This document shows, in pieces, positions 25,101 to 64,000 of a DNA stretch of 64,000 nt. The stretch covers positions 2,976,001 to 3,040,000 of the forward strand of contig OZ116705.1 of the NCBI GenBank assembly GCA_964199315.1. Reading direction: 5' to 3'. Numbering within the stretch: position 1 is the first letter of the stretch; every line of letters starts with the position of its first letter. The position numbers and the translations under genes are program-made. The notes beneath the pieces are model-generated. The model worked only from the letters and a program-made list of their open reading frames with translations, was not told the origin of the DNA and did not search any database. The stretch comes from Orbicella franksi. Its lineage: Eukaryota.

Positions 25101-25432
25101 TTCTTCTTCGATTTCTTCGGTCTCGCAGTGCTATCCGACAAGACGGAGTACGATGGAATGAGCCCGCAGTTTAGGACAGCAACATTGCTGAGGAACGCAA
25201 CGTCGAGCAATCGGTCTACAGTCGGCTCACTGTCTGATTGAATGACAATTATCGGACTTCGCCGGACACTACCCGAATGATTTTCGTTTTCTGAAAAGCG
25301 CGCGAAAATGTGTGACCAGGCCTTTATCATGCAAATGTGGAAGCCTGGTAGTTTTTTGACATGCCTACAACGATGAGCGATACATACAAAGCGATTGATA
25401 CAGTGTAGTTGATTCTGCGACAATAATTTCAT
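22139..25432 (-). CDS. TDP2: Tyrosyl-DNA phosphodiesterase 2 (UBA-like domain plus EEP nuclease domain); 354 aa from ATG 25075 or 473 aa from ATG 25432
   Basis: Exons: 24950-25075 (frame open upstream to 25432), 24793-24864, 23945-24000, 23517-23714, 22139-22751; GT-AG and frame-consistent. UBA-like FMAVTGAEDTVALSYLQQSSWNVE; EEP motifs LSWNVDGL, VFLQEV, MGRHLL, TSHLES, GDTNLRD, RFDR, FPSDHWG. Start codon uncertain. Confidence 0.92.
24336..24633. mobile_element. Palindromic Harbinger-like MITE with an extra right arm, TDP2 intron 2
   Basis: Near-perfect 215-bp hairpin 24336-24550 (GGCCGTTTTCACACTAGAGACGGATAAT...ATTATCCGTCTCTAGTGTGAAAACAGCC) plus a second right arm ending 24633; ATT flanks both outer ends. 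Confidence 0.75.
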
Positions 25433-27549: not shown

Positions 27550-30500
27550 ATGCCGGCTGATCGCTTGCGAACCATAAAACCCAGGACAGCTTTAGTGTTT
27601 CTCGCCGTTGGCCTTCTACAGATTTTCGGTATGTATCGTCCCATTTTGCTAACTTCACGGAGCGCTGGCGCGATTTAGAGTTCTTAGTGTGGCTAAAGCA
27701 TTTTTTTTTATTCTGTCACAGGTACCCTCGCAAGTTTTGACTTCTCCAAATCAACTTTCATCTGTCAAGGAAGCGAGAAAAAGATAACTTATGCTCTAAT
27801 ATCTGGAGGGTACAGACATGAACGGGCGGTTGTTGGTAACGCACGTTTTCTTAGCTCCTCAACAAATCTCCATAGCTGTATCTCACGCTGTTGTAGTTTA
27901 ACATGGTGCAAGCATGCTTTCGTGTCGCAACGCAAGTGCTACGGCGAGCCATGCACTGGAAGTCCTCCCTTGTATCGAAGACAACGAAGTCTTGTTCCCA
28001 CCACAGGCTACCTTCACACAACGTCCACACTAACTCCAGCGGAAAGTGCGCAGCAAGGTAGCATTTAAATTAACCTTGTATATCTTTGATTTGTTTTACT
28101 ATACCTAATTGATCTATCACCAGTAACGATGCAACACGCAGTGCGTAAACCTTGAATAGCTTAGCAGTGGTTCGATTGTAACGGGTTTAACCAAGCATAA
28201 TTTCAACAAATAGGTCTTTAGCTAAGCAGCCGGTATTTAATTAAATACACTATTGATTCCTGTCGGTACTCAGATCTGTTTTTGGCATTATATTTTTACT
28301 TTTATCTTTAATAATCGGCCATTTTTCACACATTTTTTTCTCTGTATCTGGCTTGTATGACGCGGTGATAAGAACAGTTATGATCTAAACCTGCTGGAAT
28401 GAACGCGGGGGGAAAATTTGACATTTCATGATTTTCTCCCCTTTAATAGCGTTTTTATTTGTTATGTTAAATATATTTTTACCGATTTTGCTGATTAATT
28501 TGTGGAGATGTCATCGATTGCCTTGGGGAAGGTCGAGAAAGAAGAGACTTTTTCTCCTTTTAAGGTTACCGTATATCTTCAGAGGTGTCTCGCGTCCAAG
28601 CGATGTAGTGCGTCCGATTTAAACTAACGATAGGTAAACTCCACATCAAATTAAAGCTTATAAAGCTGGCTATCAAGCTATACCAAGAAGTTTGAAATAA
28701 AATGAATTGTGGAGTATTTCACGACCTCTAAATGGGAGCTTCCGAAACACCTTTTGAAAGCTTCAAGTCAAAGGGCTTTGTTCGTTAATTTTCCCTTAAG
28801 TTTGAACAGTAGCTAGGTTAACATATAAACAACAAAATCGTGTCAGCAAATTGTTTATTTCGAAATATTTTTTCTCCAAGAGCGATTTTTGTACGATCAT
28901 TGCACATTTTTTAAATCCAATTTCGAAAATGTTCTGTAACTTTTTACTGCAATTGAATATGGCAAAACGCAAACCCTTTTTTAGCGCTTTGGGTCTGGAA
29001 ACTAAGGAACAAATTAAATTAACGAAAAACGAACTTCGCTTTAACTTGAAGCTTTCAAAATGTGATTTGGACGCTCGCATTTAAAAGTCATGAAAAATTC
29101 GACAATTCATTTTGTTTCAATATTCTTTGAAAATATAGTTTGATAGCCAGTTCTATAAGCTTTAATTTGATACGGGGGTTTGGATATCTACAGTTTAAAC
29201 CGGACGGGCTACATTACTTGGACGCAAGACACCTCTAAAGGTATACGGTAACCTAAAATAAATCTGTTTTGGTGAGCCAGAGACACAGTAAAATAGTTTG
29301 AGATTAAATAGAAAGCAACAAAGCCCTGGTTAATGAAAAACTTTCCTTGTATTGGCTGCTTCGTTGTGTAGCGACTGCATACAGGTTTAAAACCCGTTTC
29401 GGCTTTCATTGTGTGTTGCCCTGAATTTTAATGTCTCGATATTCATATCAACCCGGGTTTCACGTTGCCAGAAACAGGAATTTATTTGGCTTTATTATCG
29501 GTTGAATTACCCTTTTGTTATCGCCCAGTACAGTTCGCGATACTCTGTGAACAAAACCGTGAAATTTCCTCAGGGTAGCATCGCTCCAGTAAACCATGTA
29601 GCTATGGAGTATCAGTGTTGCCAAAAGTATCGACTATTCATGCGCTTGACTTTTAAACCCTAGCCAACCTAAATAAATGCTTGAATAAATAAGGAGGCGA
29701 GCCTAAGAACATTGAAAACATATTTTCTTTACACGGGGATGTGCAGGCAAAGTGCACAGTTAGTTTACTGCATTTTATCTTAAAGAAGCAAATATTGTGT
29801 CCGTTTATGTACTTCATTCAATATATTGTAAAACTTTGTCTCTTTTTTCAAGAGCCACGCGTTTTTGGCCACACTACCCCAAGAGAACTGAATTATTAAC
29901 AATAATTTCTGCCTCAGTGACTGACACCTGGAGGGAAGTAACTACAGTGTAGATCGAGTTCAAGAGAGCATGTTATTTATATTTTAGAACATTTTTCTGA
30001 TTACTTGTGAATTGAAGGAAACCTTAAAGTAATAGTTAAGTAAGGTAGAATTTGCAATAAAAAAAAAAAAAATAGAAAATGAACTAGACTGGGTATGATG
30101 CGAAAGATTTAGACGGATTAATAGGCCGCTTTCGATATATCAATATTCTAACATGGATCCGAGGCTTTCGGGTCAAAGTTGCAATTTTTTTAAAAGTTTC
30201 TTTTGTCTCACAATTCCCAAAAGAGACTTGGATACAAAGAAAATAACACCAAAGGAAGACGTTTGTCCTGAAAGCCCCGGAGCCATGTTAGACTGGAGCA
30301 ATGTTACATGTTAACCATGCAATTATTTAGAAATTGTTATTAGTTAGGAATTTTTACAAGACCAAATCAGCGCTGCTGTAATTTTGAATCGTGTTTAAAT
30401 AAATGCTATTATTATTATTATTATTATTATTAGAATATTGATATATCGAACGCAGCCTATTAAAAATGACGAGCTTAAATAAGACGGCCATATTTTCTAG

Positions 30501-33500
30501 ACTCGCCTTACACGGCGAAGCTCCTTAAGCACCCAAAAGCGAGCTGGAGACAGCCAATATTTGTAACGAAATTTTGTTATTTTAGATGTTTCTTGGGCCC
30601 TGTCCGACTTAACTCAGTGCAAGAAAAGTGCAATCGTCTTCAACTCTACTTTGGCCAATGGCTATCAGTCCGGGAAATTTGTGGACCATGGAGACCTGGG
30701 CGCCATGTCCGTGTGTCAAGATCTGTGCTGTCAATCACACGAGTGCGACGTGGCATTTATGGCGGGAAAACGTTGTTTCTCTGTTCATTGCCACAGCCAG
30801 GCGCAGTGTTTGTGGATGCCAGCCAAAGACAACAAATACATGCTGCAACTTTCTTATATCGCTAGTGCTCACAGTATTCCATTCAGCGGTAAGTCACCAC
30901 TAAGCTCAGCACAGATTCCGGATGTCTATTTTCCTCGATCTGAGTGCTCTCTTTTCTCCAAAATGGCGAGTAGAGCTCATTGATAACCGTGGTGAATAGT
31001 CTTCTAGTTGGTTTGAGGTTGATACAATGAAAACGTTTCTGGTCCGCAAGGACAGAAACTCCCCCTTCCCCAACGTTCGGAATACATAATTGGTTGATTA
31101 AGACGCGTTTCTTTGAAAGCATTCAGATAACTTACTGCTTTTCCGGGCATTCATTCCAGAATTGTCTCAAAAGCTCTCTCGAAACTGCAATGTCTTTTAG
31201 GGTTTCTTTGACTTGTTACTTCAGTCGTATCTGACTTCGAGACGGAGAGCAAATATTGGTCCCAGGGCTCTCTAAAAAGTGGCCTTTGGTATGGACCATT
31301 TTTTTTTAGGGTGGGGTTGGGCAATTTCTGAGAAAAAATTCCTGCATAGCAGGGACTGCTGGAAAAAAAATCATGCAAGGGGAGCCATGGGAAACAAAAA
31401 TCGAGCAAGTGCTTTCTAACATCCAGGTCCTGTATTTTGACGTTAAAAAATTCTTGCACAAGCTATTGCTCACCAAAACAAAAACTCGTGCACAACCTAA
31501 AGTAAGAAAAAATTCCATGCTCCAGAAATTTGCCCAACCCTTGGACCCCCGCCCATCACCCCCTTCTAAAAAATTATGGTCCGTCCCTTAACAAAATGAA
31601 ATTCAATAAAATTCGCACGTATTCCAATTTTGTCATGTTATAGCTTTGAGAATTAACAGTATCTTATTGCCGTTAATTTCTTATAGCGTCTTCACTGAAG
31701 GTTGATCAACCCACAGAAGTAATGTTTGAAGTGGAAGCAGATGCAAGGCCTATTAAAACTTATAAGACTGGAAACCAACAAACGGCACACACATTGTCAC
31801 GTAAGCCACCCAGGAACAGAGAAATACCGACAGTGTCACGCAGTAAGCTCAAAGGTGGAGGGAGTGAAATGAAATCAGCGTCGAAACACAACCCTACGCA
31901 TGGCGTGACAGGGAAGACCACAACGGCTATGTCACGCGATCACTTAAAAGTCAAACACAATAAAACTACTTCTGCACCGCCGCCATTTCATGGTAAGGAC
32001 ACTAAGGAAAACACTACTGTGACTGTGTCACGTAATCCTCTAATAGCCGAGCACACGACAACTACGCAGTCTGTGTCGCGGCGTGCTAATAAGGGAGAAG
32101 CCTCACCAACAGCGAGTAAAACAGCACAGGCGATTTCACAGAATGTTCCCAAGATAGGACAGGAAAAGGCCAAACAATTTGAAACACTAAAGCCCCCAGT
32201 TCCAAAACAATCACATATAAAAGACGATTTAAAGGGTCCAAGAAGTATGAAAGTTAGCGCAAGCCCTGCCACGACAGTTGCATTGTCTAGCACACAGCAC
32301 GTATTGAGGAAGCAAACTCTTGCTGAAAACAAAAACAGCGTCGTTTTGATCAACTCAGAAAAACTTGCACCTTCCTCGCAAAGTAATGCAATGGCTCACT
32401 CGAGGCAACCGCAACCTAGATTAGCCTCTTCCCTAATCTTCTATTCCAAAGCGTCTACTTCAGTCTTTGAAAGTTCTAGTACCTTTGTAGCTGGCAATGT
32501 TTCTCAATTTGATTCGCAACACACTACGGACGACGCAGTGTCTTGCAAAGACAGCGAAATATTGCGAGATGTTTCTCCTCCAGTCGGACAAGAAACTGCA
32601 CTGGGGCCTGTACCGGACATGCGTACTTGCATTGAACTAAGTTGTGATCACATGGGTGGTGACGTTGCTTACATGCGCAGTTCGCAGTGCTTTGTGATCA
32701 CGTGTCAAAGTCCTGCCTTGTGTCAAACGAATGAGCTAAGACCTGGTATTTCAGACACTAACACGACGGTAGCCTTTCTCAGAAAACGAGGTCAACATTC
32801 TAAAGGTTAGTAACAATAACATAATTGACAAAAGTCAGGTATTTTGTCGTCGTTTAAGGTGGAAAACAAAGCAACTCATACTCTGAAAATGGAAATTTTA
32901 ATCGGGTTTTTCTCCTGACGTACATTTGTTTGATTTAAATTTTCAGATCACATTTTTGTGGCGGATAGACTTCAGTGACGAATTTCTTTATTCTTGTCAC
33001 CTTTTTTCTTAACAATTTATCGATATGTAAAGAAGAATCTAGAAGTTGATCAACCTGGCGATTCGCAGATTAAATTTCTTCTATAGATTAAACAATTAAG
33101 ATGCGTTGCATAAAGTGAAAAACGATTACCGGAGAGTGAATTGTATCTATGTTTTTGATCATGTTGTGGTTAGATTTCCTAACTTTAAAGCATTTCAGAT
33201 CAAAGGTTTGCAGATCTCCTTTTGAACTGTTTGGTTAAGTCAAACACTGCACTAAATTGGTTTGACAAGTTCTAACGAAATATTAAACATTTTTGCTTAA
33301 ATTTGTTTTGAAAACAAGTAACTTCGTTCCAAGAAACAAACTATTTGTCGTTCTGTCAAAATTTTTCCAGAAAGTATTTGGAACTACGGTCGTTTACCCC
33401 TTCCTAAGATAGATCAAAACCTATTTTCTCCCCCTGATATCTACGCAATGACAACCAGACAGGTGATAAGAGAAAAGAAAATCATCAAGTAAGGCATACT

Positions 33501-36500
33501 GCCTAGATGTCGGGGAAAGTTATCAGAAACTTAAAAGACGGAACCACACGACGATCGACGAGGAAAAGTTATTTAATATTTCAGGCTTGACACACTAAAC
33601 TCTCAACTCACCGAGAACCTGCTCAGAGCGAACTATTTAAAATTCCTGAGTTTGAACCGTTCATTGGTCTGTATCGTAAATAACCACCGGTGTTAATTGT
33701 TCTTCCGAGTCAACATGGGTTTCTTAGGTCAGTAATTATAAATCGGGCACCAGCCATTTTTCAAATATTTTCGAACGCTAAATCCCATAAACTAGTCGGA
33801 AAAAATGCGAGATGCTAAGAGCTAGTTTCTTTTAGTAAGTGGTAGTGAGTGGAGGTACAGGATTTAAATCTAAATAGGGGTCGTTTTGACGCCTGGAATA
33901 TCACTGAAATTGCGGTAGCGGTGGTCTGAAATTGTCGCAAAACAACCAGAGAAAAACACTCCGTAAGTATATATTCGGTTGACATTGTTTTATCCCACAT
34001 ATTTTTGCTTCCATTCTTTGCCACAGTGTAAACGTAAATAAGTTGCGAGCTGAAGTTATAGGTTAAGGCAAATCAGATTTTCCGTGAATCGTTTTGTACT
34101 TTTCATGTTGCTTAATATATTTCAAGCAAAACTGGTTTATAATTTGTCTTAGTAATCCTTGCATTGCCGAGGTTTTGAATGCAAGCTTAATTATTTACTT
34201 GTAAACTTTAACAGCTCGAGCTCAAATTAAGGGCCGCCAAATCTATTGATTTCGGTCTGACAATTTTCCTCGTGAATTTTGCTTATTACCTTGCCATAAC
34301 AGATACATTAAATATTTACCCAGTTACTGCCGATATCTCATATCCTATATATTTCACTGTTAGTCATATCCACTGGGTGAAAATGATCCTGGAGAGTTTC
34401 AAAAGCCTTGACGATGTTTCTTTGTTTTCTTGTAACAGGACATCGCTCAAGAGATTCTGTCTCGAAATCGCTCAGCCGTGGAATTAATAATGTCTTTAGA
34501 ACAAGCCAAGCTTCTCTGGCGCAATCACCGTCTAATGCGAAGACACCTTTGCCAACTAAACCATTTGAAGTTCAAAATTCATCTTCAAAGTCTACAGAGG
34601 TCTTCGAGAACAGCATCTCAAAAGCAATTCCTTCTGTCTTTTTGGCTTCCTCGCACATATCAGATGACACGCCAGAGCTTTCAGGGTTATATCACCTCAT
34701 ATCTTTCCAAGAGGTCGATAAGTCCGGGCGACAGGCTAGTCACATTCCCACTCCCCTGATAACTACATCTCGTCAAAATGGACCCCATTCTCCTCGCCGG
34801 GATTTGGCGACGATGTTGGCCGAGCTGGCTGGATCGAATTCCTCTTCGCAGAATGTACAAGCATCCTCTACAGTTGGTAGTGGAGCATTGGAGAGCATTT
34901 CCCTTAGAACGCGAGGTAAAACGCCTGAGAGAAACGTTTTTAGCATTGACTTGAGTTTCGCCGATAGGGCATAGATTAAGAACACAGGGAAGAAAATTCA
35001 ATTACCGTATTTAGTATCAAGTGATACATAGGAGCGACTACGCCGACCGGGTTTGCCTGTAAGAGTTGTGTTTAAAAGAGCTACGTCACGGATTGCCCAT
35101 CATGAAAAGTGTAGCCTAAAGTTTTCAAGTTGCTTTTTTGAAATCCTCGCTAATCCTTTCCATCCTTAACTATCCTTGTTCCGCTATGGCTTGTCGTTCT
35201 CTCCCTGGTGTTTTTCTGTGTTAGTAAACTACTATTTTCAGGTTTCCTTCAATTTAAAGGTAATTTTGTGCGTGGCTGAAATAACTCAAAATACCGTGAC
35301 TGAGCTCCTTTAAACACTGAGATTAATAGTTCTTATTATAGTGCGTTAACAACAAGAGCGATACATAATCGCATTTGTGCATTGACCAATAACCAATCAC
35401 TTTTTCTTTGTAGCCGAAAAAAGCCAGGTGACGAACACAACAAAAGTCCACCATGCTGACGTCACACTATCGGCGTGCCATTACGGTCACGTGTACTACA
35501 ACTACTCCTTGTTATATGGCCGAAAGGCGGGAAATTTTACCGATCGAGGCGAAGTCAAGAACATGAGTGAATGCCTTCGTATATGCTGCAAGGACGTGTC
35601 CTGTAAAATTGCTCTTATGTTAGAGCTCAATTGCTACTCCGTTGCCTGTTATGGAAAGTTTTGTCAAACCGTGCCAGTGAAGCCATTTCAGTTCAAACCG
35701 AAAATTGCACACGTCATCAGACGAAAAGGTAAGAGTGAAACTGGTGTTCTTTATGCGTAAACTAATCAATTGGTGACGAATGAAATTGGAGGATAATTTC
35801 ACTTAAAAAGTAAAATTCAGTTCACGAGTGCTTATTTGATCACCTATTAACATTATGGAAGATAAATTACAAGTTTTACCTTAGCTTCTTTATTAACGAA
35901 GAAATTTCCTTTTTCAAACGTTTTGATTTTGAAAATTGCCATAATCTCTTTATTCTGAATTAAGTAAATTGTCACCATAACACCCTTTCCACTTTTAATG
36001 TGCTGATAGCATGTTGGATATGAAAAGCCCATAGGTTTCCGGTACGACCTTGTTAATTTCAGTCGAAATTGAAGCTGCTTAATAATTATAGTAATTGAAA
36101 ATATTTATACAGAGTAACCAGAGTTATTAAACTGTTGTCAATGTGGGCCCTTTTACTTGAGCAAAATAAGGGTAAAAGTCTTTCGGAACAAAAACATGGA
36201 AAAGTTCTGGGCAAAAAGCTGAAAGCATTATTTGTACCAAGGTCACTTATAATGAGCCCCTTCTGGTGGTGTTAGTTTTGAGAAGTTTGAAGCTGACATA
36301 GAAAACTGACAAAGAACATTTATTCACAGAATAACTAAAACGCTTTGAAACATTTTCTGCAATATTTTTTGATTGCTTGATATTCCTCTTTTTTGTTTCT
36401 CATAGTTGTTTCGGACACGACCAGAAACCTTCCACCCACACAATCCAGCACTTCCCATCACCCTCCGGGAGCAGTCTCTTACAATGTTACGCTACACCAG

Positions 36501-39500
36501 CACCAGGCTCCTCCCGGAGCGTACGGTGGGAAAGCTGGGGACCACAGGAAGGCTGAGGCACGTGGTAGTGAGCAAGGTGACCAATCAGATAAGCGTAACC
36601 AAGGCAATAACAATAGCACACGTGGGAATAGCTCTTCCAAGTTTCCGTATAAAGTCTACGAGATGTCTTCGGGTGACGATGCAGGGAAGGGCGATCAAAG
36701 CGAGTTTGCTTTCCGAGAGTTTAGCCGTTTAGACATCCTTTTGAACTTGTCGCTGATCCACAGAAAGCGTGCTCTCGATATCTCAAGATATCTAATCGAG
36801 ATTGGGAAAACCACAATAGAAACCGGCTTGAGAATGGTGCAAATTCATAGCGGGAACAAAACACAAACCGAGAACTTCAAAAGTACCGTGAAAATCGGTA
36901 GGAGACTGATTTCAGCCGGAAAGAAAATCCTGGCTCGTGGGGAAAAAGTTCTCAAGGCAGTCCTGCACCCAGCTAGCGAAAAACCGCTCAAGGCACACGA
37001 GCCAAATATACCAGCTACAAGAATATCAGACCTACAAGTCGTGACACCAGTGATCAAGATGATATCACTCTGCAGTCACGGACCCTCTTACTATGGCGTT
37101 ACTCTGTTGGGAGGAATTCGCGCGGGACACTTTGTCAGTCACGGAAGAGTTGATAACATGCAAGCGTGTATCAAAAAGTGCTGCGCGAATCAAGAGTGCG
37201 ATTTGGCTTTCATGGTGAAGGAAGACTGTTATTCGGTTATCTGCTATCACAAAAGCTTGTGTCGAAGCGTCCGAGCGCAGCATATAAAGAAATACAAACC
37301 TCGTATTGCGCATATATGGAGAGGGTCTAACAAAGAGAAGGAACGAGTGACTGGCCACTTCCGGTCGCGTCAGCCGTCACGGAAGCATATGAAATCAACT
37401 GGGAAGGGAAAGTTAGCCATAGTAAAGTACAAAGATTTGAAGAGCGTGACTCGTGATGTCATGTCACGTCCAATGTCACAGAATCGGATGAGGAAGACAA
37501 AGGCACGAAAACGAAAGAGGACTCAAGCTCAACACTACAGGGAAAAGGTAGCTCGGACGCAAATCTCAGCTAATGACTTTGACTCTCATCTTTCTTCAAG
37601 TATATCAAACTTTCATTCTTCCACGCATGAAAGATCTCGTTTGAACGCAACGCAAGGCTTAACTCAGAAAAGTTATTCAAGGAGTTCTCAAGGGCAAACT
37701 GCTTCTAAAACACTCGTGATTAAACCTTCAACATCCATAGAGTCAAGCAAGAAAGATTCCCGAATAATAAAGGAAAGCATAAAAGTTACCAGTTCTACGC
37801 GTCGAAGCCATTCATCGGGTCTTAAGGAAGCAAATTTCACTGTGCATAAAGACACGACTTCTGAAAAATACCCAGTAGAGAAGAAGAGCAACAACGCATG
37901 CCCACACTCTCCTATTGAGCATAATGTCGGACTCCGCCATGGCTTGAAAACGGGTAAATTTTCGTATATTGGAGAATTGTTTGATATAGAAAAGTGTCTT
38001 GACGTGTGTTGCCACGAGCCAGACTGTGATATAGCTTTCATGTTAGACCAGTCATGCTATATGGTTAATTGTACGACTGAATCAGTGTGCCGTAGTGTCC
38101 CATACCATCAACACCAGTACTCCACAAGGGCAGTTTTTGTTTTGAGACGCTTCAACAAACACAAATCTGGCTTTGATAGTATTCAGCGCGTGGCAAGTCT
38201 TGGGAGAAGTACAATGCCCACTTTGTCCTCACACAAAGCCTTCACGAAGGGTAGTGTTGTCACGCCCACTATTGTACAGGCTACCAATATCGAGACAGAG
38301 CACAACAGCGCTAGTCCTTTGCAAGACTCTGACGTGGAAAACGGTCCAGAACTATGGCAGGACGAAAAGATAAAGATTAACTTCACTGGAGCACAACACT
38401 CTACGCCAAAAGGCAACGAATTCGACCTCGTGGAAATCAAAAGCAACAAAAGTGCTGACGAAAAATGGAAAAACGAGAAAATCCGGGTTCATCTTGTGAA
38501 CGTGGATAACGCGGAAAGTCGGCCGTCCTCCTTAAGGCAAAAGTCCAATTTGACATTAGAGCATTCTGATAGACTTACATCGGGTAAGAGCCATGTTGAT
38601 GCGCGTAACAAGGTTCCTAAAACAAACTCAAAGCCACATGTCTCGGTTACTTCCCACAATTACTTGACAGAAAGCGAAGAGAAGTTGGAAAGTTCTTCAG
38701 AAAAGGAAAACGACGTTGGGAGAAAAGGATCAAATACTAACGAATCAGCAGTTTATCACAAATACTCGTTGAAAATCAAAGTTGCTCTAGGCAGTGGGGA
38801 CAGTTCACTTCAAGGTGAACCAGATTATTACAAGTCTCAATCACAGACCAGCAAGTTCTTCGATTCATACGCTCACAAGAATTCTGAATTAGTTAAGAAG
38901 ACTGCGGAGAACAGTGGAAGAGCGGGGTCTGGAATGAGTGGTAGTGCCGAGTTAGAGACCGGGAGCGATTACGACACAAGCTCCGCCCAGTACGAAACAG
39001 GTTCTAGCCTGTACGAGACAGGCTTTACATTCGATTCGTCTTCCGCAGAATCAGCGTCCCAAAATTGCTCCAGTTACTCTTACTATAATGTCACTTTACA
39101 AGGAGGTGTTCAAGCAGGAAATTTTACGTTCGCCGGCCGAGTTTCGTCAAAGGAAGATTGCGTGACTCGTTGCTGCTCAACCGTGGGTTGTGACTTGACT
39201 TTTATGGTCCTGGATAGGTGTTTTCTTGTTGATTGTTACCGTGACGATTTGTGCGATGTCACGGAGGCAAGAAATGCAGATAAATTTGAACCAGTGATTT
39301 CTTACGTGAACCTGACAATCATAGACACGCTTGTTGCAAGATCGATCGAAAACAGTGGTCTTATGTCCATAGAGAAGAATGATAACAGTTATGTTAACCA
39401 GACGTCTAGCGAGAAAGAAGACCGTTCACATGATGTTGGAGAAATTAAAACTGTAACAACTAACCGTGTGCATAACACACCTTGGACTCACGACACGGTC

Positions 39501-54500: not shown

Positions 54501-57500
54501 TGTTGCTTTTATGCTTTTAAGCCGCTGTTTTTCAGTCTCTTGTTACAATGAGACTTCTTGCAATAGTATTCCGGCGCGAGGTTTAATTTTCCAGCCTCAG
54601 TTGGCCTATTTAAGAAGAAATGATACTTCAAGAAGTACATTGAACAATCATTTCGCAACAGTTGCAATTTCTAAAACACAAACTTCGGTCATGGTGTTCT
54701 CTTCATCGAGTGAACTAGGAGGAACGGAAAGCAAAAAAAGCTTGGCTCGTTTCCATGACAACTGTCGCTATAGTAACTCGGAGATTCACGTAACCCTTCG
54801 AGGAGGACTGAACGCAGGATCATTTTTGGACTCTGGTGTAGTTGATAACATTACGGAATGCGTCGATAACTGTTGCCAGGCGACCAAATGTGACGTTGCC
54901 TTCATGATCGTGAAGAGATGTTTTTTGGTAACGTGCTATAGTTCCAGCCTGTGTCAGAGCATTCCTGCGCGAAATTCCGGCTACTTCACCGAGATTGTGC
55001 ACATAGCACGAGACGAGAACGCTGTTGTTCGAGATCTTCTAGCAAGACTCGTGCAATCATCGTCGCCGCCTGTCAAGATGAAAAGCGTTGTTTCAAGTTC
55101 GGTGGAAACCTCCACATTCCGTGTTAACCTTCTCAACTCCAGTAGCTCGCTATTTCTCAATAGCACCACAGGTGGCTCCATAAGTAAACTCTTGACACTG
55201 AGTGGCCATTTTACTGGTTTCTACAGCGGATCAAGTTTGCCCTCAAGGCCACCCGCTGTACCTGCTTTTAGGGCGGTAATCAAATCTGCGATTGCACCGC
55301 TAAACGTCAACAAACAAGGAATAGTTGGACTGATTCAAACGATAGGTATGTCAACACGTCCATTGAGCACTCGTCATGTACTCGATCAGAACATTACGCC
55401 ATCTTCAGTGAAGCTTAATTCACCATCAAGCTCGCAATGGCCTGAAACTGTCGGAGATGGAAATATACAAGGAAAACAACTGGAAACTGTAGAGTTTTCG
55501 AAAGATGAAACATGTCAAAGCACAGCTGTTTTTTACAATGCAACCATGCGTGGAGGAATTAATGCTGGCGTTTTCAAGGACCAAGGGACCGTGCAAAATA
55601 TGCGGAAATGTATTGAGCAATGTTGCCGATGGCAGTTCTGTAGTGTAGCGTTTATGCTTTTGACTCGTTGTTATATAATTGCCTGCTACAATGATCACTT
55701 GTGCGATCCTGTTACAGCCAGAAATGTGACTTTCACACCTCGCATTGCTTTTGTTTCTCGTGTGCGGAGAGATCATGGCAATTTGAGTAGAATTTTAGAA
55801 AACATCCCAACACCTACCTTGTCAGTCTACCAGAAGTCACACCTTAAAACATCAACAGGAGGGACAAATTTCACAACAGCCAAAGTTTATTCAAACAAGG
55901 CATTATTCCCGTCTACATTGACTAACGCAGCACCACAGCTGCCAAGTTCGCTGGCAATTAAACCTTCGCCATCTCAATCGTCGTTTTCTAAAGTGTTTTC
56001 GTCTCGACCTGTATTGCGTCATAATTGCACCAACAGCGAACAAAAACACAATGTAACATTTCGCGGCGGGCTAAGTGCAGGGCATTTCAAAGACAGGGGT
56101 AAAGTCGCCGATATGGAAAAGTGTGTCGACTTTTGTTGCAAAGAAGACCATTGTGATGTTGCGCTGATGCTTTTGGAAAACTGTTTTACGGTCATCTGTC
56201 ACAACAAACGCCTTTGTGAGAGCGTACCTGCCAAGACTGGACGGTACAAGTCAAGAATAGTTTACGTTGGGAAGAATCGTAGTGATAAATCCACCCAGCT
56301 GGTAACGCATAAATTAACAAAGACAATCTCCTTACTAGATGCCGCTTTGCCGGCTATGGGAGAAAATAATGAAACTGAGACTTGGCAAAATAGAAAGAAA
56401 ACCACTGTCTCTGAGAGAACTCGTAGTTTTGAGTCTCAACAACTTACGCAACTCTTATCTTCTCCACCGTTTGAGGAGGTCGACCAATCGAGTAACATCT
56501 CGAAGATAGAAAATTTGACTTCTACCGAACATTCCACAAATCAAAGTGAAACAAATAAAGAACATGAGAGTTTGATACTTCAAAAAAAATTACATAAAAA
56601 CGCAAAAACTAAAACATTTGACGCTACGGCGTCACAACGCAAACAACATCACCTGATTTCAGCATCTGTATCATCAGGTCATAACACTAGCTTGCTATTT
56701 TCGTCAACCATAAGGCTGAACGCAAGCGTCTGGGCTCTTCCTGAGCCAGGTAAATCGGCCATAAAAAGGGGTGGAAAGTCAGGACACAAATCTGGGCTAA
56801 CGTCGACTTTTACGAACCCCTCACAACACTCATTTCCTCAACCTTCCTCTTGTCTCAGCAGCCCGATCTCTTACAATGTTACGCTACGCAACGGTATCCG
56901 ATCGGGCTATTTTAGAGACCAGGGGAGGGTTGAGAATAATGGCGCGTGTATACAAAAGTGCTGCGGCGCTGAGGACTGTGATGTGGCTTTCTTGCTCAAG
57001 CAAAGGTGCTACCTCGTCACGTGCTACACTAAGAAGGGATGCGAGACAGTTCCAGCCAGACACAGCTTATTCAGACCACGTGTTTCTCACGTGCAGCGGA
57101 CCAATGTTTCCCAACTGATGTCGTTCATGGACGAGCAGGATGATGCTTATTCATCTGGGAAGACAGCTTCTATCCAGTCTCGCAGCAGTACTCGAACTCA
57201 TTTTATTACACCGTCTTCGACCCTCCCCGCTCCAGTTAACTCACTTGATAGTAGTAGTATACATAAAACAGAAACAAAGGCGTCACCAACTCACAAGGCA
57301 CAGGCATCTCCAGCTCACCACAGTGGAACGAAACATCACAAACTAAAGACTGATAAAAATAAACACAGATCTGGTAACCTAGAAACGCAAAAGAGGTCGC
57401 AGCACGTGACAGTAGCACCTGAGCTAAAGAAGAGGAAATCGATGAAGTCAACAAAGAGTCGACGCGCCAGACATAAACCTAAACCAAAGGAGACAAAGAG

Positions 57501-60500
57501 TGAATCATCAAGAGCCAAAATGCAACATTTTCAGTTACAAATGGTGGAGAAAAAAGATCAGAAATTGTCTCATAGTGACTTGAATCAGTTATTCCATCTT
57601 ATGAAGCCCACGAAACGAGTGAACAATGCTCACAGCATGTCAGATGTTGGACCACAGGAGACGAATTCTGACAGCTTAAAAAAGACAACACAACCAGACA
57701 AAATATCCCTCAAGGACGGAGCTATAGCGTCATCGTTTAACTTTCCAACAGTTATAACGACGGCCCCAACTCCTTCCGCTTCGAAACAGGACAGTTCTCG
57801 AAAAGCAGTGGCTGCAGGTTTTGACCATAGGACATCTAAAAAGAAAAACGAAGCTACTAGTTTACACAGAAAGTCATCTGCGTCCACTCACAAAGGAGCG
57901 ACTAAGCAGCGTACTAGGCCTTCTTTGGCAGCAACAAAGCCACATTCAAGAAGTCACAAGTCTCAAACCACAGTAACAGGTCGTCTTGATTTTGCTTCCC
58001 AAGTTAAGGCTCTTCTTGAAAAAGAAGGCGACAATAAGGAACATTTTGAACAAACCAAAAAGGCAAAGTTTAGCCGAAAGACAACGACTAAGCAAAAAGC
58101 TACTTTTATGAACACTAAAGAATTTCACGATTACACTACAACATCAACTACGTCACGTCTAACAGCACCAACCCGAACAAGGTTACGTTTAAATACACCG
58201 CGGCAACCTACTGTACTGCCACCGAAAGTTTCATCGCATCGTGGAAGTAAATTCCGTGAAACGAAATCAACTGTACCCTCCTTGCCGACACAAGTTCCCG
58301 ATCTTCGGGTCTCAAGTTGTGCAACAGGCCATGTGGAATGTAATCAAACATTACGGGGTGGGTTGTCTTCAGGTTTGTTTCATGAGGTAGGCAAAGTGAC
58401 AGATATTCGGGGATGCTCACAGCACTGTTGTTCCAGTCCCATATGTGATTTAGCCTTCATGGTACTGAACCACTGCTTTTTGGTCACCTGTTCAAGTTCC
58501 AATCCTCACATGTGCGATAGCACGCCAGCCTTGGCTACGAACTTTAATCCGATGATCTCTCGTGTATCGCGAAGTGGGAGCAAAGACAATAAAGATCAGC
58601 CGATGAAAACTGCGTCGGACAGAAACAACAAACCAACCCCCACTGTAAAGCCACTTGCAACACCACCTAAGTTGCCAAGGCAACCAGAAATGGAAGCGCC
58701 GGTACCTGCTAGTAACGTAACCAACCAGTCAACTGCCGAGAATCAAGCAAATTCATCTACGTCACCTGCTAACTCGTCACGGAGACACCCTGAAGCTAAA
58801 GAGAGTGGTGCAATGCCTGTTTCTGCATCTGAAATGCTACCATCCCCTCCAGGCTGCATTTCCTCTTTAACGGAGCACAATGTTACACTAAGAGGGGGTC
58901 TTCATGCCGGAAAATTCACAGACGCGGGTAAAGTGGACGGGTCTTACACTTGTACCGAGCTGTGTTGCAAGGCAGATAACTGTGATGTAGCATTTTTCGC
59001 TTTTCATCGCTGTTTCCTTGTCAACTGTTTCGATGAGTACCTTTGTACTTCCACGCCCTCGTTGCTGCCGAACTTCAATCCAACTCTGGTTCACGTGTAC
59101 CGCCATCATTCAAAACCAACGCCAAAGCCATCAACGACTTTACCACCAATCAACTATGTGTTGCAGCAAATCGAAGATGAAACGAAAACAAAATCAAATA
59201 GCAAGAATAAAACTTGTGCCCATTCTGAAGTTTATGAAGAAGTCACGCTTAGGAAAGGCTACAAAGCTGGAAAGTTCACCTCTCATGGTAAAATCAATTC
59301 TACAGATCAGTGCGTCGACTTCTGTTGTAGACAGTCTGGTTGTGACTTGATTTTCATGTTTCTAAACAACTGTTTCACAGTTTCCTGTTCCAGTGGAGTC
59401 GCGTGCGAAATCGTATCAGCGAGACAATCCAGGTTTAAACCTAGGGTTGTTTATTTGATTAAAAATAACTCCACCAAGCTGATTAAACCATCAGAATTGA
59501 ATTCTTCTCTCTCTGATCCGAAATCTTTCGTCGGAAAGCAGCCTGTGAATGCCGTGCATTATAAGGAACTGCTATCGGATAAGAATAATGGGGGATCGTA
59601 CAAGAAGGACTTCAGCCAAATGAGCAATGACACCGAAACAATAGATGAAGAGTTCACGGAAGTTCCTGATAACAAAATAACGTCGCGCACTGTCATCAAT
59701 ACGGCGGGAAAAGTTAACTCACAACATCTGAAACACAACGTTAGCGAACGTATCGTGGGAAAAGAGCCTTTACATACCTTGCAAAATAAGGTGTTGCGAC
59801 TGAGTGAGAGAAATCAAGAATCTTACAAAAAGAACTTCACCCAAATGAACAATGATACCGAAACAGTGGATGAAGAATTTACGAAAGTTCCTGGCAACAA
59901 AATAACGTCTCGCACTGTAATCAATTCTGCGGTAAACGCTAGCTCACAGCGTCAAAAACACAACATTAGTAACAATTTAATTGCTAAATCCGATATTAAA
60001 ACTACAAAACAACGCTTCAAGGACAACCATCAACCGAAACTTGAAAGTGGTGAAATGACCAATCACAAGGAAAGCAGAACAGACGAAAAGATGGACCTTG
60101 TGTTGAATAAACTAACCAACGTCACAGAAGAGAATAAACGCCTTGAAGGAGAGCTTCACGTTGTTATGGCCAAACAGAATAAGCGCCGTCATAAAAGTAG
60201 AGTAACATCCTCAGTTCCGGCTAGAGGAGAGCGTATGAAAGAGAAGTCACAGTCTTCAAAGAGTATTGAAAATAAACGGATTAAGTATAAAGAGAGGCGA
60301 AGAATGGGTAGGTTAGGATTCAGTGGTGACGGATCCGGAATGGACTCCTCAGCTCGGAAAAGGGTAGTCATTGTGGATACAGACAGACCTCCAGTGTTTC
60401 CGCCAACAGATGAGCATAACATCGAGGAACACAGTATACATGCATTCCGGAGGAAAACGTATCAAAAAGATCATCACTTGAGAAAATCTGGAAAGGTGAC

Positions 60501-63500
60501 ACCAGAGCAACGACCCCTAAAAAAGCAGCGTAACAATACAAAGACAGGATTAAAACACTGGGATCCGACAAATGAACACGATATCGAGGAACATTCTATT
60601 TATAGCATCAGCGATGTATCGGAAAGCAGGAGCGAATCGATGAAAAACCCGCACGTTAAGGTGGGAGAAGGTTCGGAGGTCAAGTACGGACAACCCGAAG
60701 AAGACACAGATGATCTCGAATTGAACGACATTCTGAAGCTGAAACCAAACAATAAGCATGCAAGGAGACCAGAGGAACCAGTGTGGATAAGTTCCAGTGA
60801 TGAAAACAAAGACGACAGGGAAAGCTTCCATGAACAAATACCTCCTACTCAAAAATGGCATTTCAAGTTTAATGACCGAACAAACAAGGAGCATACCAAT
60901 GAGGATGAATTCCACATTGAACATCAAGATAAATCAATTGCAAGGTTGGCTGATAAAAACGTTTGGATGAACACAAGAAATGAAGATATAGATCATAAGG
61001 AAAGTTTCCATGAAGAAATATTTCCAACACATAAAGCGCACTTCCAGTTGGATAGCCAGAAAGGCCTCGGACATACCAGTGAGGATGAATTCCACGTTAA
61101 ACATCAATATAACTCTAAGTTGGCTGATAAACATGTTTGGATTAACACAAGAAATGAAGATATCGATAACATGGAAAGTTTCCATGACCAAATAGCTCCA
61201 ACACACAAATCGCATTTCCAGCTGGATGGCCAGAGAGGCCTCGAACATGCCAGTGAGGAAGAGTTCCACATCCATGATCCAACTTCGCCTGCAAAACATA
61301 TGTGGATGAGCTCGACGAATAAAAACAAAGACCGTTTGGAAAACTTTGATGAACAAATAGCTCCAACTCACAGATCCCATTTCCAGTTGGACAAACAGAA
61401 AGAGAGGATGAGAGAGGATGAATTCGACATTGATGGCAACGATAAGTCAGAGGATTCCGAAAGCCATGTCTGGGTTAGTTCGAGAGACAGAAATGAAGAC
61501 CATTTGGGAAGCTTTCATGATCAAATAGCTCCCACCCATAAATCCAATTTTCAATTTGAGAACCAGAGAATTAACAAAAATTCCAGAGAGGACAAACGGC
61601 ACAAAGAACAACAAGATAAGCCAGATGTGTCTCAACAGCATGTGTGGAAGAGTACTAGGAATAGAAATGAAGATCGCCTAAAAAGCTTTGATGACCAAAT
61701 AGCTTCTACTCATAAATCCACCTTCCAGTTGGATAAACAGCGAGAAAACCAGAATACCAAAGAGGATGACTTCGACATTGAAACCCATTATAGACCAGAG
61801 GAACCCCAAAGGCATACATCGATTGGTTCGCGAAATAAGAATGAAGACCAGCCGGGAAGCTTTAATGAACAAGTAGCTCCTACTCATATATCGCATTTCC
61901 AGTTAGATAAATCGGGAGATAACTATCATTCTAACGACTACGATTTTCATCTTGAAGACAACGTTGAGCCGCAAGATTCTGAGAAACATGTGGGGGAAAG
62001 TTCGAGAAATCGAAGCAAAGATCACATGGAAATGGTAAACGTTCCTGAACCAACTGTGCCTTCTCATACATCTAGATTCCAATTTGATAATCAGGGGAAG
62101 ACCAAGCATATCAACAGAGATGAATTTCACATTAAACAGCAACACAAACCATCTGTACATGAAGTGGCTGGCGCTGAGCCAAAAGACCAACATGACAACG
62201 AGCGCCCGGAAATGTTGTCTCAAAATGTCTCAAAGGAGCCTGAAACTGACTTCACAATGTCGAACTCCTCTGAGCCTGCTTTGTCAGAGTTTGTCGAGTC
62301 AGAAAAGAACACTGGGACATCTCAAGTGGGGCATGGTGCTGAGGGACCTGTTTTTGCGAAGGAAGACTTTGCTAAAGGACATAAAAGGGTACCACATGAT
62401 CATAACGATGGTAGCAATAGCAAGCCAATTGAGGAGATGGCTTTGACGGAAAAACCCTTAGATATTTCTACCTCCTCATCTGTGACCGAGCACACAGGAA
62501 ATGGGCATAAAACATTGACTCTTCCCGATCGAAAGCAAGAAAACAATAGTCATGAAAAACCAGACCTCGACGCGATCTATAACAAAATAAACAACATCTA
62601 CAATCGCCTGCAGGATCTTTTTGACGCACAGTCTCGAAGAGAACGAAATACGACCCGTTCCTCTCGTAAAACACGAGGAAGGCTGGATGGAGTAAGCGAA
62701 AACTCAAAGAGGCGTGAAGAAGGTATACCGACGCCCCCAGTGTCATCCCTGAGGCCTACAACTCTTCCTTCCAGGTTAACACCACCAACAAAGAGAGTAC
62801 GAGTTGTCAAACAGTTTGTAACTGATGACTTTGGAGGCTCTGGTGTGCCGCCACATCGCCATCGAGATGCCCTCATGGATTACATTAAAACCATTTATAA
62901 TCGTGTGCAGGAGTTATACAAAAGGAAGCTGAAGACTCCACCTCCTAGCAAAAGAAGAAAGTTTCATCATGTTTTTGCCTCAAGGGACGACAGAAAACAA
63001 AGGAAAACCAGTAAGGGGAGAAGTCACACGAGGAAAGCGAAAAATTACCATCGTAAGAAAGTTGAAGAGGAAGCAGTCTTGAAAGAGATGAAGCGGATAT
63101 ATAAAAATATGAAGGAAATGTACCATCAGCAACGGAAAGCGCAGAAGAAAGCCAAAATTATCGCTCAAACCTCTGAAGGACAACATCAACGGTCATACAT
63201 TCCTTCACGTTATGGTGCTCGTGAAAGTGATGGTCGAACAGCTCCAACTGTGGAGAGTGCGAAACCGACAGGCCTGGTGGAGACTCTCGAGAGGCCAATT
63301 TCACTGACCAGTAGTATCGTAGGAGCTCGAGTTAAACCACAAGTTCATAAGACCGGTAAGTACCCGTCGTGCATTGTCTGATTTGATAGTCAAACAATTA
63401 AATGTGAAAGAAACGTGTGGTTTTTACGACAGGTTGCTACGTCTGACAAATTTATTTAAGATATCTCTGAAGGCTGTATTGCATAAAAAGGTGAATACGA

Positions 63501-64000
63501 TACGTTGAACGTGAATTCCAAACTTGGGACGAAAATTTTGAAGGATTAATTGACAGGTTTGTCGTGGTGATTTCCGTAGAGACTCCCTGCAAACGTGAAA
63601 TATTGTTTCTGGTTTATTTAACATTTCAATGTCAGTTTCGAACAAAGGGAATAGTTAAATAACCTCGATAGAACGAGTTTTGCTGTGTAGTTTGAATTAA
63701 GATTTGTTCATTTTGTGTTTTCCCATTTCAGACAGTGGACATCGGCTTGCCCATGAACCTCCAAGGCAACCTAGTGATGAAGGTTATCAGCGACACAAGC
63801 CGACAGAACCTAGCAAAGGTTACAATGACTCGATCAAGCATGGCGGTATTTTGGCTGATAGCTTGGCTTCAAGACATCCTACAGTTAACCAGTCATTCAT
63901 TGACAGGATAGTGGCAGAAATCCAAGCGGAGCACCCGATCATTGGAAAGAAGAAAAAAAGCAATAAATCCGATAACTTGCAACAGTTGATTGACAATGTG
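27550..64000 (+). CDS. Giant secreted or cell-surface protein with 27 MANEC/MANSC-like 8-Cys modules and mucin-like Ser/Thr spacers (at least 9,758 aa, 3' incomplete); possibly KIAA0319/AAVR family
   Basis: Exons: 27550-27628 (signal-peptide-like MPADRLRTIKPRTALVFLAVGLLQIFG), 27722-28057, 30586-30888, 31687-32805, 34439-34915, 35414-35728, 36406-41196, 41771-63355, 63732-64000 (open to the edge); 29,274 nt. All introns are GT-AG and phase 1. Module pattern: C-x31-C-x3-CC-x4-C-x9-C-x4-C-x5-C with vTlrGG.aG.F and cdvAFm...Cf.v.C. Confidence 0.85.
28564..29253. mobile_element. Foldback or Kolobok-like non-autonomous element with arms over 200 bp
   Basis: TTAA|GGTTACCGTATATCTTCAGAGGTGTCTCGCGTCCAAG... 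versus ...CTTGGACGCAAGACACCTCTAAAGGTATACGGTAACC|TAAA; inverted similarity continues through ATCAAATTAAAGCTTATA and TTTTGAAAGCTTCAAGT. Confidence 0.75.
30118..30463. mobile_element. MITE containing a LINE-like 3' tail insertion (30293-30429)
   Basis: TTAATAGGCCGCTTTCGATATATCAATATTCTAA ... TTAGAATATTGATATATCGAACGCAGCCTATTAA; the insert ends in AATAAATGC(TAT)n and is flanked by TTAGA repeats. Confidence 0.75.
31286..31590. mobile_element. MITE with decayed left terminus
   Basis: Right end ATGGTCCGTCCCTTA; left end TGGTATGGACCAT followed by a T/G tract mirrored by a C/A tract on the right. Confidence 0.5.
36406..41196 (+). CDS. Giant gene exon 7 (4,791 nt), 7 MANEC-like modules
   Basis: Acceptor ctcatag|TT, donor ATTG|gtaagg. 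Modules start at about 37071, 37899, 39066, 39528, 40308, 40635, 40926. Matches ORF 36393..41237. Confidence 0.85.
41771..63355 (+). CDS. Giant gene exon 8 (21,585 nt), 16 MANEC-like modules plus His/acidic repeats
   Basis: Acceptor ttctgatcag|AAAACC, donor ACCG|gtaagt, uninterrupted frame (ORF 41866..63381). Modules start at about 46285, 46615, 46933, 47233, 47563, 48604, 49003, 53953, 54370, 54763, 55513, 56026, 56851, 58318, 58855, 59215. Confidence 0.85.
60775..62150 (+). repeat. Coding tandem repeat: 8 copies of a ~55-60-aa His/Asp/Glu-rich unit
   Basis: Consensus [KH]VW.s.rn.neD...SFh[de]QIaPTHkshFQld.q......ededFhi, visible in the translation of exon 8. Confidence 0.85.

Follow-up and report, generated by a model that had tools for sequence, protein, structure and literature searches.

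A putative giant membrane-anchored MANEC-array glycoprotein gene, ortholog of the miR-2030 host and target 2030T, in the stony coral Orbicella franksi

Introduction

In the sea anemone Nematostella, the precursor of the microRNA (miRNA) miR-2030 lies within an intron of the gene NVE19315, whose transcript carries two nearly perfect miR-2030 sites, both of which are sliced (Moran et al. 2014, PMC3975064). Host and miR-2030 are co-expressed at the oral end, the arrangement constitutes an incoherent feed-forward loop, and the product was termed an 'unknown protein' (PMC3975064). Only two miRNAs are reported to be conserved throughout Cnidaria, miR-2030 being one of them (PMC7935066), and a conserved interaction between miR-2030 and the target 2030T has been predicted for Stylophora (PMC7935066; 2026 Acropora preprint 10.64898/2026.05.09.724056). 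LOC5501396 has been named as the miR-2030 target (PMC8141815), and the equation of both rests here on that paper. The present study concerns a stretch of 64,000 nucleotides (nt) from the stony coral Orbicella franksi (GenBank assembly GCA_964199315.1, contig OZ116705.1, positions 2,976,001 to 3,040,000 of the forward strand), hereafter the window, the coordinates of which are used throughout; a preliminary description of its sequence had proposed a giant extracellular protein built from 27 MANEC-like cysteine modules.

It is probable that the window holds the start of the coral gene for a giant type I MANEC glycoprotein, the ortholog of 2030T, with self-limited expression. We infer that positions 27550 to 64000 of the + strand comprise the first nine exons, about four fifths of the gene. 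Judging from collinear sequence, the gene is the ortholog of Nematostella NVE19315 (2030T, LOC5501396), and the full coral protein is estimated at about 12,000 residues with about 33 MANEC modules. The gene is already known at the RNA level, as the ortholog of 2030T, and not at the protein level; new with respect to the literature searched are the positions of the sites in the coral, their coding context, the position of the hairpin and the nature of the protein.

Gene Structure and Reading Frame

The window contains no undetermined nucleotide (N). From 27.5 kb to its end, the two longest stop-free frames of the + strand comprise 7,204 and 1,618 codons, the others being shorter, and each open frame is bounded by an acceptor with a polypyrimidine tract and by a GT donor. 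The resulting model has nine exons from 27550 to the end of the window, all junctions being GT..AG and in phase 1. The product of exons 1 to 8 is 9,668 amino acids (aa) long and stop-free, and reaches 9,758 aa with the 90 aa of exon 9 located within the window. The exons are the following:

27550 to 27628, + strand: exon 1, ATG and putative signal peptide; donor TTTTCG/GTATGT, phase 1.
27722 to 28057, + strand: exon 2, MANEC module 1 (degenerate, 7 Cys); Pfam, module profile and splice sites.
30586 to 30888, + strand: exon 3, MANEC module 2; module profile, with RNA contigs that end and join at both bounds.
31687 to 32805, + strand: exon 4, Ser/Thr/Lys-rich linker and MANEC module 3 (degenerate, 6 Cys); RNA joints 30888/31687 and 32805/34439.
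34439 to 34915, + strand: exon 5, linker only, without module; RNA contig joints on either side.
35414 to 35728, + strand: exon 6, MANEC module 4; module profile and RNA contigs.
36406 to 41196, + strand: exon 7, MANEC modules 5 to 11 and linkers; module profile, acceptor confirmed by RNA contigs.
41771 to 63355, + strand: exon 8, a single exon of 21.6 kb with MANEC modules 12 to 27; module profile, open frame and orthologs.
63732 to 64000, + strand: exon 9, linker, running past the end of the window; homologous to residues ~2970 to 3038 of a Montipora protein.

The N-terminus, read from the translation of exon 1, has a basic n-region followed by a 14-residue hydrophobic core, TALVFLAVGLLQIF, as expected of a signal peptide, and looks like one. 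In exon 8 the modules form three clusters (46261 to 49230, 53935 to 57078 and 58300 to 59442) with Cys-free linkers of about 1,500 aa between them, and the exon ends in a charged tail of 1,304 aa with the donor AGACCG/GTAAGT, 23 nt ahead of the stop of the frame. Exon 9 is 48% identical to the annotated Montipora protein (E 3e-13), and its match in metagenome contig L008, which is 99.5% identical to the window, extends to approximately the equivalent of position 64525.

Identity and Fold of the Modules

A strict pattern search retrieved 23 copies of the cysteine spacing, every one on the + strand; the typical unit has 64 aa and is exactly C-x31-C-x3-CC-x4-C-x9-C-x4-C-x5-C. With a hidden Markov model (HMM) built from these copies and run over the six frames of the whole window, 27 significant modules were obtained (E 3e-7 to 1e-29), distributed as 1, 1, 1, 1, 7 and 16 over the open frames, and the best score on the - strand was only E 0.3. 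All eight cysteines stand at the fixed spacing in 23 of the 27 modules, the four degenerate ones being modules 1, 3 and 12 (6-7 Cys) and the short module 10. The mean pairwise identity among the copies is only 37%, and therefore the array is old, with no recent amplification. The 27 copies are spread across 8,300 residues, instead of the single N-terminal copy of the MANEC family, a difference of architecture and not of domain identity.

Both relevant Pfam families were matched well above their gathering scores: PF23597 (KIAA0319_N) with 193-230 bits per piece against a cut-off of 27 (E 1e-58 to 1e-69), and PF07502 (MANEC) with 61-104 bits against 25.5 (E 1e-17 to 1e-30). Exons 3 and 6, taken singly, also pass the PF23597 gathering score, and exons 2 and 4 are just below it. 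The profile of the 27 copies had the MANSC domain of HAI-1 (2MSX, E 0.001) as its best solved structure in the PDB. An AlphaFold model of module 24, based on the alignment of paralogs, had a predicted local distance difference test score (pLDDT) of 87 and a predicted template modelling score (pTM) of 0.74. Compared with the PDB by Foldseek, this model had the HAI-1 MANEC structures 5H7V and 2MSX at the top (prob 0.97-0.98; template modelling score normalised by the query, TMq, 0.54-0.60), followed by the apple domains of factor XI and prekallikrein, the N domain of HGF and the PAN domain of plasminogen. Among reviewed AlphaFold models KIAA0319 was first (TM score 0.75, root-mean-square deviation 2.1 A), followed by KIAA0319L, LRP11, MANSC1, MANSC4 and HAI-1, and a look-up in the ESM Atlas returned the same domain family again. 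On these profile and structure models, the modules are MANEC/MANSC (KIAA0319_N) domains with a predicted PAN/apple-type fold and presumably four disulfides each.

Linkers and Evolutionary Pattern

Every cysteine of the 9,668-residue product falls within the 2,193 module residues, and the 7,475 linker residues contain none. The linkers consist of S 15%, T 9%, P 5%, K+R 13% and D+E 10%, with 132 N-x-S/T sequons, a composition less Pro/Thr-rich than that of classical mucin domains. The three longest have 1,511, 1,568 and 1,304 aa, the last one being unusually charged (D+E 16%, K+R 17%, H 6%). No tandem proline/threonine/serine (PTS) repeats were found in the linkers with Tandem Repeats Finder (TRF) over 37 kb; the sole array has a 174-nt unit in 2.1 copies.

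Across the orthologs, the identity of the modules to the window decreases from 92% to 50%, practically without indels, and that of the linkers from 75% to 24%, with hundreds to thousands of gapped positions, the linkers being still open and Cys-free. Exon 8 has 16 modules in all 30 of the coral orthologs, its product ranging from 6,139 to 7,666 aa. Such a pattern is characteristic of folded binding knobs set on spacers that are disordered and probably glycosylated, in which the length of the spacer, and not its sequence, appears to be loosely constrained.

The gene model, the module count and the general layout of the preliminary description were all reproduced: the nine frame-consistent exons with the exact number of at least 9,758 aa, the signal peptide, the 27 modules in their division over the exons, their assignment to MANEC/MANSC, now with a predicted structure that folds accordingly, and the 'beads on a string' arrangement of conserved modules and fast-evolving linkers. 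The linkers of up to ~1,570 aa were also recovered (longest 1,568 aa); their description as Ser/Thr-rich holds in a moderate form.

Two side observations were made in the charged linker of exon 8. A His/acidic repeat region at 60775 to 62150 includes the TRF array mentioned above (58-aa unit, 2.1 clear copies at 60892 to 61271), and no Pfam match was found in 60775 to 62151. At approximately 63070 to 63130, at the end of the exon, a short charged motif, VLKEMKRIYKNMKEMY, is recognisably kept in the Montipora and Nematostella orthologs amid fast-evolving linker; a conserved helix is possible, as is a site of processing or interaction.

Orthologs and the C-Terminal Part

A search of 5.8 billion proteins retrieved approximately 30 orthologs of the giant exon, with identities of 54-99%. 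Two annotated proteins were also recovered, LOC5501396 of Nematostella (6,953 aa) and a 5,252-aa protein of Montipora foliosa, both collinear with exons 8 and 9 by tblastn. The Montipora model begins at the equivalent of window position 53218 and extends ~2,300 residues past exon 8. In both annotated orthologs the MANEC array is followed by Laminin_G_3, two MANEC, Laminin_G_3, four MANEC and EGF/Ca-binding EGF/I-set Ig domains, and then by a hydrophobic transmembrane (TM) helix and a short basic cytoplasmic tail. In contig L006, ~84% identical to the window, exons collinear with the C-terminal part of the Montipora protein come after exon 9. No TM segment is present inside the window, and no VWD, TIL, CTCK, SEA, PKD, LDLa or Kunitz domain was detected by Pfam in the window exons or in the ortholog models. 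By comparison with these orthologs, the coral protein is most likely a type I membrane protein.

The tails of the sea anemone and Montipora proteins (P0031 and P0033) end alike, in KKSLFSW(L/T)E, although they are otherwise different; this ending may be a conserved sorting or docking signal.

With HMMER, 803 matches were obtained among 1.84 billion representatives, 70 of them below 1e-30, including many long multi-MANEC proteins with 5-14 modules. Among ten distant multi-MANEC representatives that were looked up, only Hydra LOC100203833 was named, as 'uncharacterized'. Literature searches, including MANSC with coral and KIAA0319 with coral, found no paper that describes the architecture or function of the protein. 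The earlier statement that no protein of this architecture had been described stands in this respect; on the other side, the orthologs are public as 'uncharacterized protein', and the Nematostella ortholog has already been studied as host and target of miR-2030 (PMC3975064, PMC7935066, PMC8141815).

miR-2030 Sites and Hairpin

With the mature miR-2030 sequence taken from Stylophora (PMC3962355), two complementary sites were located in the + strand transcript of the window:

36473 to 36494, + strand: miR-2030 site 1, exon 7; 19 of 22 nt complementary, with differences opposite miRNA nt 5, 21 and 22.
56865 to 56886, + strand: miR-2030 site 2, exon 8; 21 of 22 nt complementary, with C opposite miRNA A5.

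Site 1 encodes VSYNVTL in a linker, 23 codons past the acceptor of exon 7 and with no cysteines nearby, and is an orphan copy without module context. The peptide encoded by site 2, ISYNVTL, forms the first strand and N-glycosylation sequon of MANEC module 24 and occurs once in each of 33 homologs, including that of Nematostella, at the orthologous place. The predicted slicing positions are 36484/36485 for site 1 and 56876/56877 for site 2.

Site 2 is identical at 22 of 22 positions in contig L007, where its flanks are 60% identical. Site 1 is conserved at 21-22 of 22 positions where its flanks have 43-88% identity, the lowest value corresponding to contig L010 (21/22, flanks 43%). Even in much remoter relatives, the peptide signatures of both sites are found at equivalent positions. 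Conservation of this kind shows the mark expected of selection at the RNA level. A chance match to miR-2030 was rejected, as none is expected and the sites are conserved beyond their flanks.

There is no sense copy of miR-2030 on the + strand within the window, and an Rfam scan of the whole window at gathering thresholds gave no matches, the hairpin being located beyond it. A perfect sense-strand miR-2030 is present in L008 (99.5% identical to window 53474 to 64000), 984 nt past the end of the window, on the 5' arm of a clean hairpin (L008:11470-11590; minimum free energy -38 kcal/mol, z -5.6). In L006, miR-2030 lies between exon 9 and the first Laminin-G exon. The contigs in which the hairpin was seen are 84-99.5% identical to the window. 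According to these contigs, the full Nematostella topology, an intronic hairpin together with two sites in its host, is also present in stony corals.

As a further observation, the hairpin and its flanks (CCGGxTAGCATAAC...GATCTTTAAG) are near-identical in eight contigs (L001, L004, L006, L007, L008, L009, L012 and L013), the coding parts of the hairpin contigs being only 80-89% identical to the window.

Transcription and Splice Support

RNA contigs were mapped over positions 30500 to 36499. The joints between exons 3 and 4, 4 and 5, 5 and 6, and 6 and 7 are exact to the base in contigs assembled from two independent runs; one contig of 893 nt joins exons 4-5-6-7, and another of 1,030 nt has exon 3 in its middle. 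For exons 6 and 7, 40-63% of the sampled words were present in RNA runs of the cDNA, polyadenylated RNA (polyA) and metatranscriptome types, and for exon 8, 45-71% of the words sampled over 10 kb in the middle of the exon were present in 14 RNA runs. At junction 7/8, the flanking exons of the relative L011 are 90% and 87% identical to those of the window, whereas the intron is 60% identical with 92 gap columns, GT and AG being kept. At junction 8/9, GT and AG are also kept. The open chain of phase-1 exons, the RNA contigs that link exons 3 to 7 and the occurrence of exons 7 and 8 in the same RNA runs agree with one giant gene, as had been proposed.

Other RNA contigs fall within three introns. 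In intron 5, the stretch 35100 to 35400 has a word depth in the thousands in the RNA contigs, with many loose ends into unrelated sequence, and is the sole place matched by the raw reads of two polyA runs labelled as the same species (X23 and X24); it looks like a high-copy transcribed repeat (a short interspersed element, SINE, or other transposon fragment) and not a part of the gene. Low-depth contigs of the metatranscriptome run X1 cover 32802 to 34253 of intron 4 (unspliced precursor or DNA carry-over). In intron 3, a high-depth piece of X1 at 31300 to 31600, with a non-canonical GC..AA joint at 31467/31570, is probably a repeat or foreign sequence.

Proposed Function and Alternative Readings

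The protein would sit in the apical membrane of a limited population of cells, in Nematostella those of the oral end, and would extend outwards as a glycosylated stalk of great length and flexibility that bears about 33 ligand-binding knobs of the PAN/apple type. It could act at the cell surface as a multivalent molecule of adhesion, coat or capture, and its ectodomain could also be shed. A single primary transcript would contain both the hairpin of miR-2030, located in the intron that follows exon 9, and two nearly perfect target sites, one each in exons 7 and 8, forming an incoherent feed-forward loop that may buffer the dose of an extremely costly protein; its expression appears to be self-limited. 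To our knowledge, no ligand has been established for any MANEC domain, even in human KIAA0319, AAVR or HAI-1.

A wider reading is put forward tentatively, at somewhat less than even confidence: 2030T would be a cnidarian-specific surface molecule of ~12,000 residues and ~33 MANEC modules, with no bilaterian counterpart, and hairpin, sites and host would have stayed coupled in a loop of dose control from before sea anemones and stony corals diverged. The extreme conservation of miR-2030 would then follow from the coding sequence of its host containing the target sequence twice, once as strand and sequon of a module and once as an orphan linker copy retained for miR-2030 alone.

Several points weigh against the reading as a self-limited, membrane-anchored giant. 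The Laminin-G, EGF, Ig, TM and tail portions of the protein in this species would lie outside the window, as deduced from the orthologs and from the contigs of relatives. The disorder and glycosylation of the linkers are presumed from their composition, the binding of ligands from analogy with PAN/apple domains, and the slicing of the coral transcript from analogy with the sea anemone. Both sites have a conserved A:C mismatch opposite miRNA nt 5, within the seed, where perfect pairing would change the Thr of the sequon to Met. Junctions 1/2, 2/3, 7/8 and 8/9 are supported by canonical sites, frame, conservation and homology, not by reads. In no case did one RNA molecule cover the gene from end to end, and the polyA raw-read runs X23 and X24 had no reads on exons 3 to 7; expression is therefore low or restricted in those samples.

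The same protein might instead be a structural part of the specialised apical apparatus of one cell type, such as the links or coat of the ciliary cone of cnidocytes or sensory cells, or the developing capsule. A single-MANEC protein, NSP5, occurs in the nematocyst proteomes of Hydra and further cnidarians (PMC6134521); miR-2022, the second pan-cnidarian miRNA, is specific to cnidocytes; and a signal that is low or absent in polyA runs from whole colonies is compatible with a rare cell type. NSP5, however, is a different and small protein, the Hydra homolog is devoid of the miR-2030 peptide signature, and Hydra miR-2030 is expressed elsewhere; this role is regarded as a less likely, though serious, alternative.

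Less probable still is a freely secreted gel or matrix glycoprotein of the mucus, the mesoglea or the skeletal organic matrix, without a membrane anchor. The preliminary description had favoured such an extracellular protein, and the signal peptide, the huge size, the Ser/Thr-rich linkers with their many N-glycosylation sequons and the lack of a TM segment inside the window would agree with it; additionally, an early-ending alternative transcript or shedding of the ectodomain could yield a soluble form. However, the donor of exon 8 and the presence of exon 9 show the gene continuing, and the orthologs and the contigs of relatives reach a TM helix and a conserved cytoplasmic tail. VWD, TIL, CTCK and other polymerising domains are absent, the linkers offer no cysteines for intermolecular disulfides, and no paper was found on a MANEC/KIAA0319-like protein from coral mucus or skeleton; this part of the earlier proposal is not supported. 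A gel-forming mucin was rejected on the same lack of polymerising domains and of linker cysteines.

That the nine exons belong to two or more genes (e.g., exons 1 to 7 and exon 8 onwards), or to a decaying, non-functional repeat array, is very improbable: the ortholog gene models do start inside or just ahead of the giant exon, that of Nematostella is without a signal peptide, and junctions 7/8 and 8/9 rest on sequence and not on reads, but against this stand the 9,758 stop-free codons with canonical sites all in phase 1, the RNA contigs that connect exons 3 to 7, the shared RNA runs of exons 7 and 8, the divergence of intron 7 (60% identity, many indels) between exons of 87-90% identity with GT/AG kept, the single miR-2030 site in each of exons 7 and 8, which match the two sites of one Nematostella transcript, and the constant 16 modules of exon 8 across 30 species or strains. 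Pseudogene and repeat debris were discarded as readings, since 29 kb are open and the number of modules is fixed across species.

On the preferred reading, that of a self-limited type I giant, the miR-2030 host and target, carried as an 'unknown protein' since 2014, would gain an identity as a membrane-anchored MANEC array and would be among the largest animal proteins; the gene most likely encodes a MANEC-domain type I glycoprotein that in the coral is a giant of 33 modules. The presence of the whole circuit in stony corals, with hairpin, two coding-sequence sites and their positions, makes the conservation of miR-2030 and the control of host dose testable. The 33 divergent MANEC copies would constitute a natural library for finding the ligands of the domain, and in coral biology the protein is a candidate for one of the main constituents of the cell-surface or mucus interface.

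Neighbouring Sequences

Pfam searches on the upstream open reading frames gave nothing related to the giant MANEC gene. The following features were recorded:

24854 to 25432, - strand: ATG-started open reading frame with a UBA-like domain (PF14555, E 7e-10), upstream of the gene; probably an exon of a divergently oriented neighbour.
22139 to 22780, - strand: weak endonuclease/exonuclease/phosphatase fragment; probably a decayed retroelement without long terminal repeats (non-LTR).

Comparison with Known Systems

The gel-forming mucins are characterised by VWD/TIL/C8 assemblies and a C-terminal cystine knot, which are absent by Pfam from the window exons and the ortholog models. The membrane-tethered mucins MUC16, MUC4 and MUC1 share the giant size, a very large central exon and folded modules amid long, disordered, Ser/Thr-rich glycosylatable sequence; they would also share, with the predicted C-terminal part of the coral protein, the short-tailed type I anchor and, as in MUC4, EGF domains near the membrane. 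In contrast to them, the coral protein and its orthologs are devoid of SEA, NIDO, AMOP and VWD domains, EGF/Ca-binding EGF/Ig adjoining the TM helix instead; the folded module is MANEC and not SEA, and there are no tandem PTS repeats, the linkers having 24% Ser+Thr, 5% Pro and 23% charged residues.

Proteins with several apple or PAN domains (factor XI and prekallikrein, with four apple domains, and nematode and apicomplexan multi-PAN proteins) also have the same fold superfamily in series, and their repeated domains serve in the binding of proteins or carbohydrates. Their PAN_1/apple domains are packed without long spacers, whereas those of the coral are of the MANEC subtype with spacers of 16 to 1,568 residues.

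The vertebrate proteins KIAA0319, KIAA0319L (AAVR), LRP11, MANSC1, MANSC4 and HAI-1 (SPINT1) belong to the same domain family by Pfam and fold, and all are type I membrane glycoproteins, like the orthologs of the coral protein. They have one N-terminal MANEC followed by PKD, LDLa or Kunitz domains, in ~340-1,080 aa; the coral protein differs in its 27 (~33) MANEC in series, in the Laminin-G/EGF/Ig domains of its predicted C-terminal part, in its ~12,000 aa and in the lack of PKD, LDLa and Kunitz domains.

Among cnidarians, Hydra vulgaris LOC100203833 (2,296 aa) belongs to the same family, with a signal peptide, 10 MANEC modules, a TM helix and a short tail. It is much shorter and has no SYNVTL signature, consistent with miR-2030 being localised differently in this animal. 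The Nematostella, Montipora and Hydra homologs each have a type I anchor and a short cytoplasmic tail, the 3' end of the window gene being outside the window.

Nematostella NVE19315 is the closest described system. In the published work its product figures as an unknown protein, with no account of its architecture (PMC3975064). The public model has 6,953 aa, 21 modules and no signal peptide, and is shorter or N-terminally incomplete in comparison with the coral gene, which has 27 modules before exon 9 and an estimated 33 overall. Both are collinear, with 41-48% identity over the module clusters, and have many MANEC modules on long linkers, the ISYNVTL-coding site in the orthologous module, two miR-2030 sites and an intronic hairpin.

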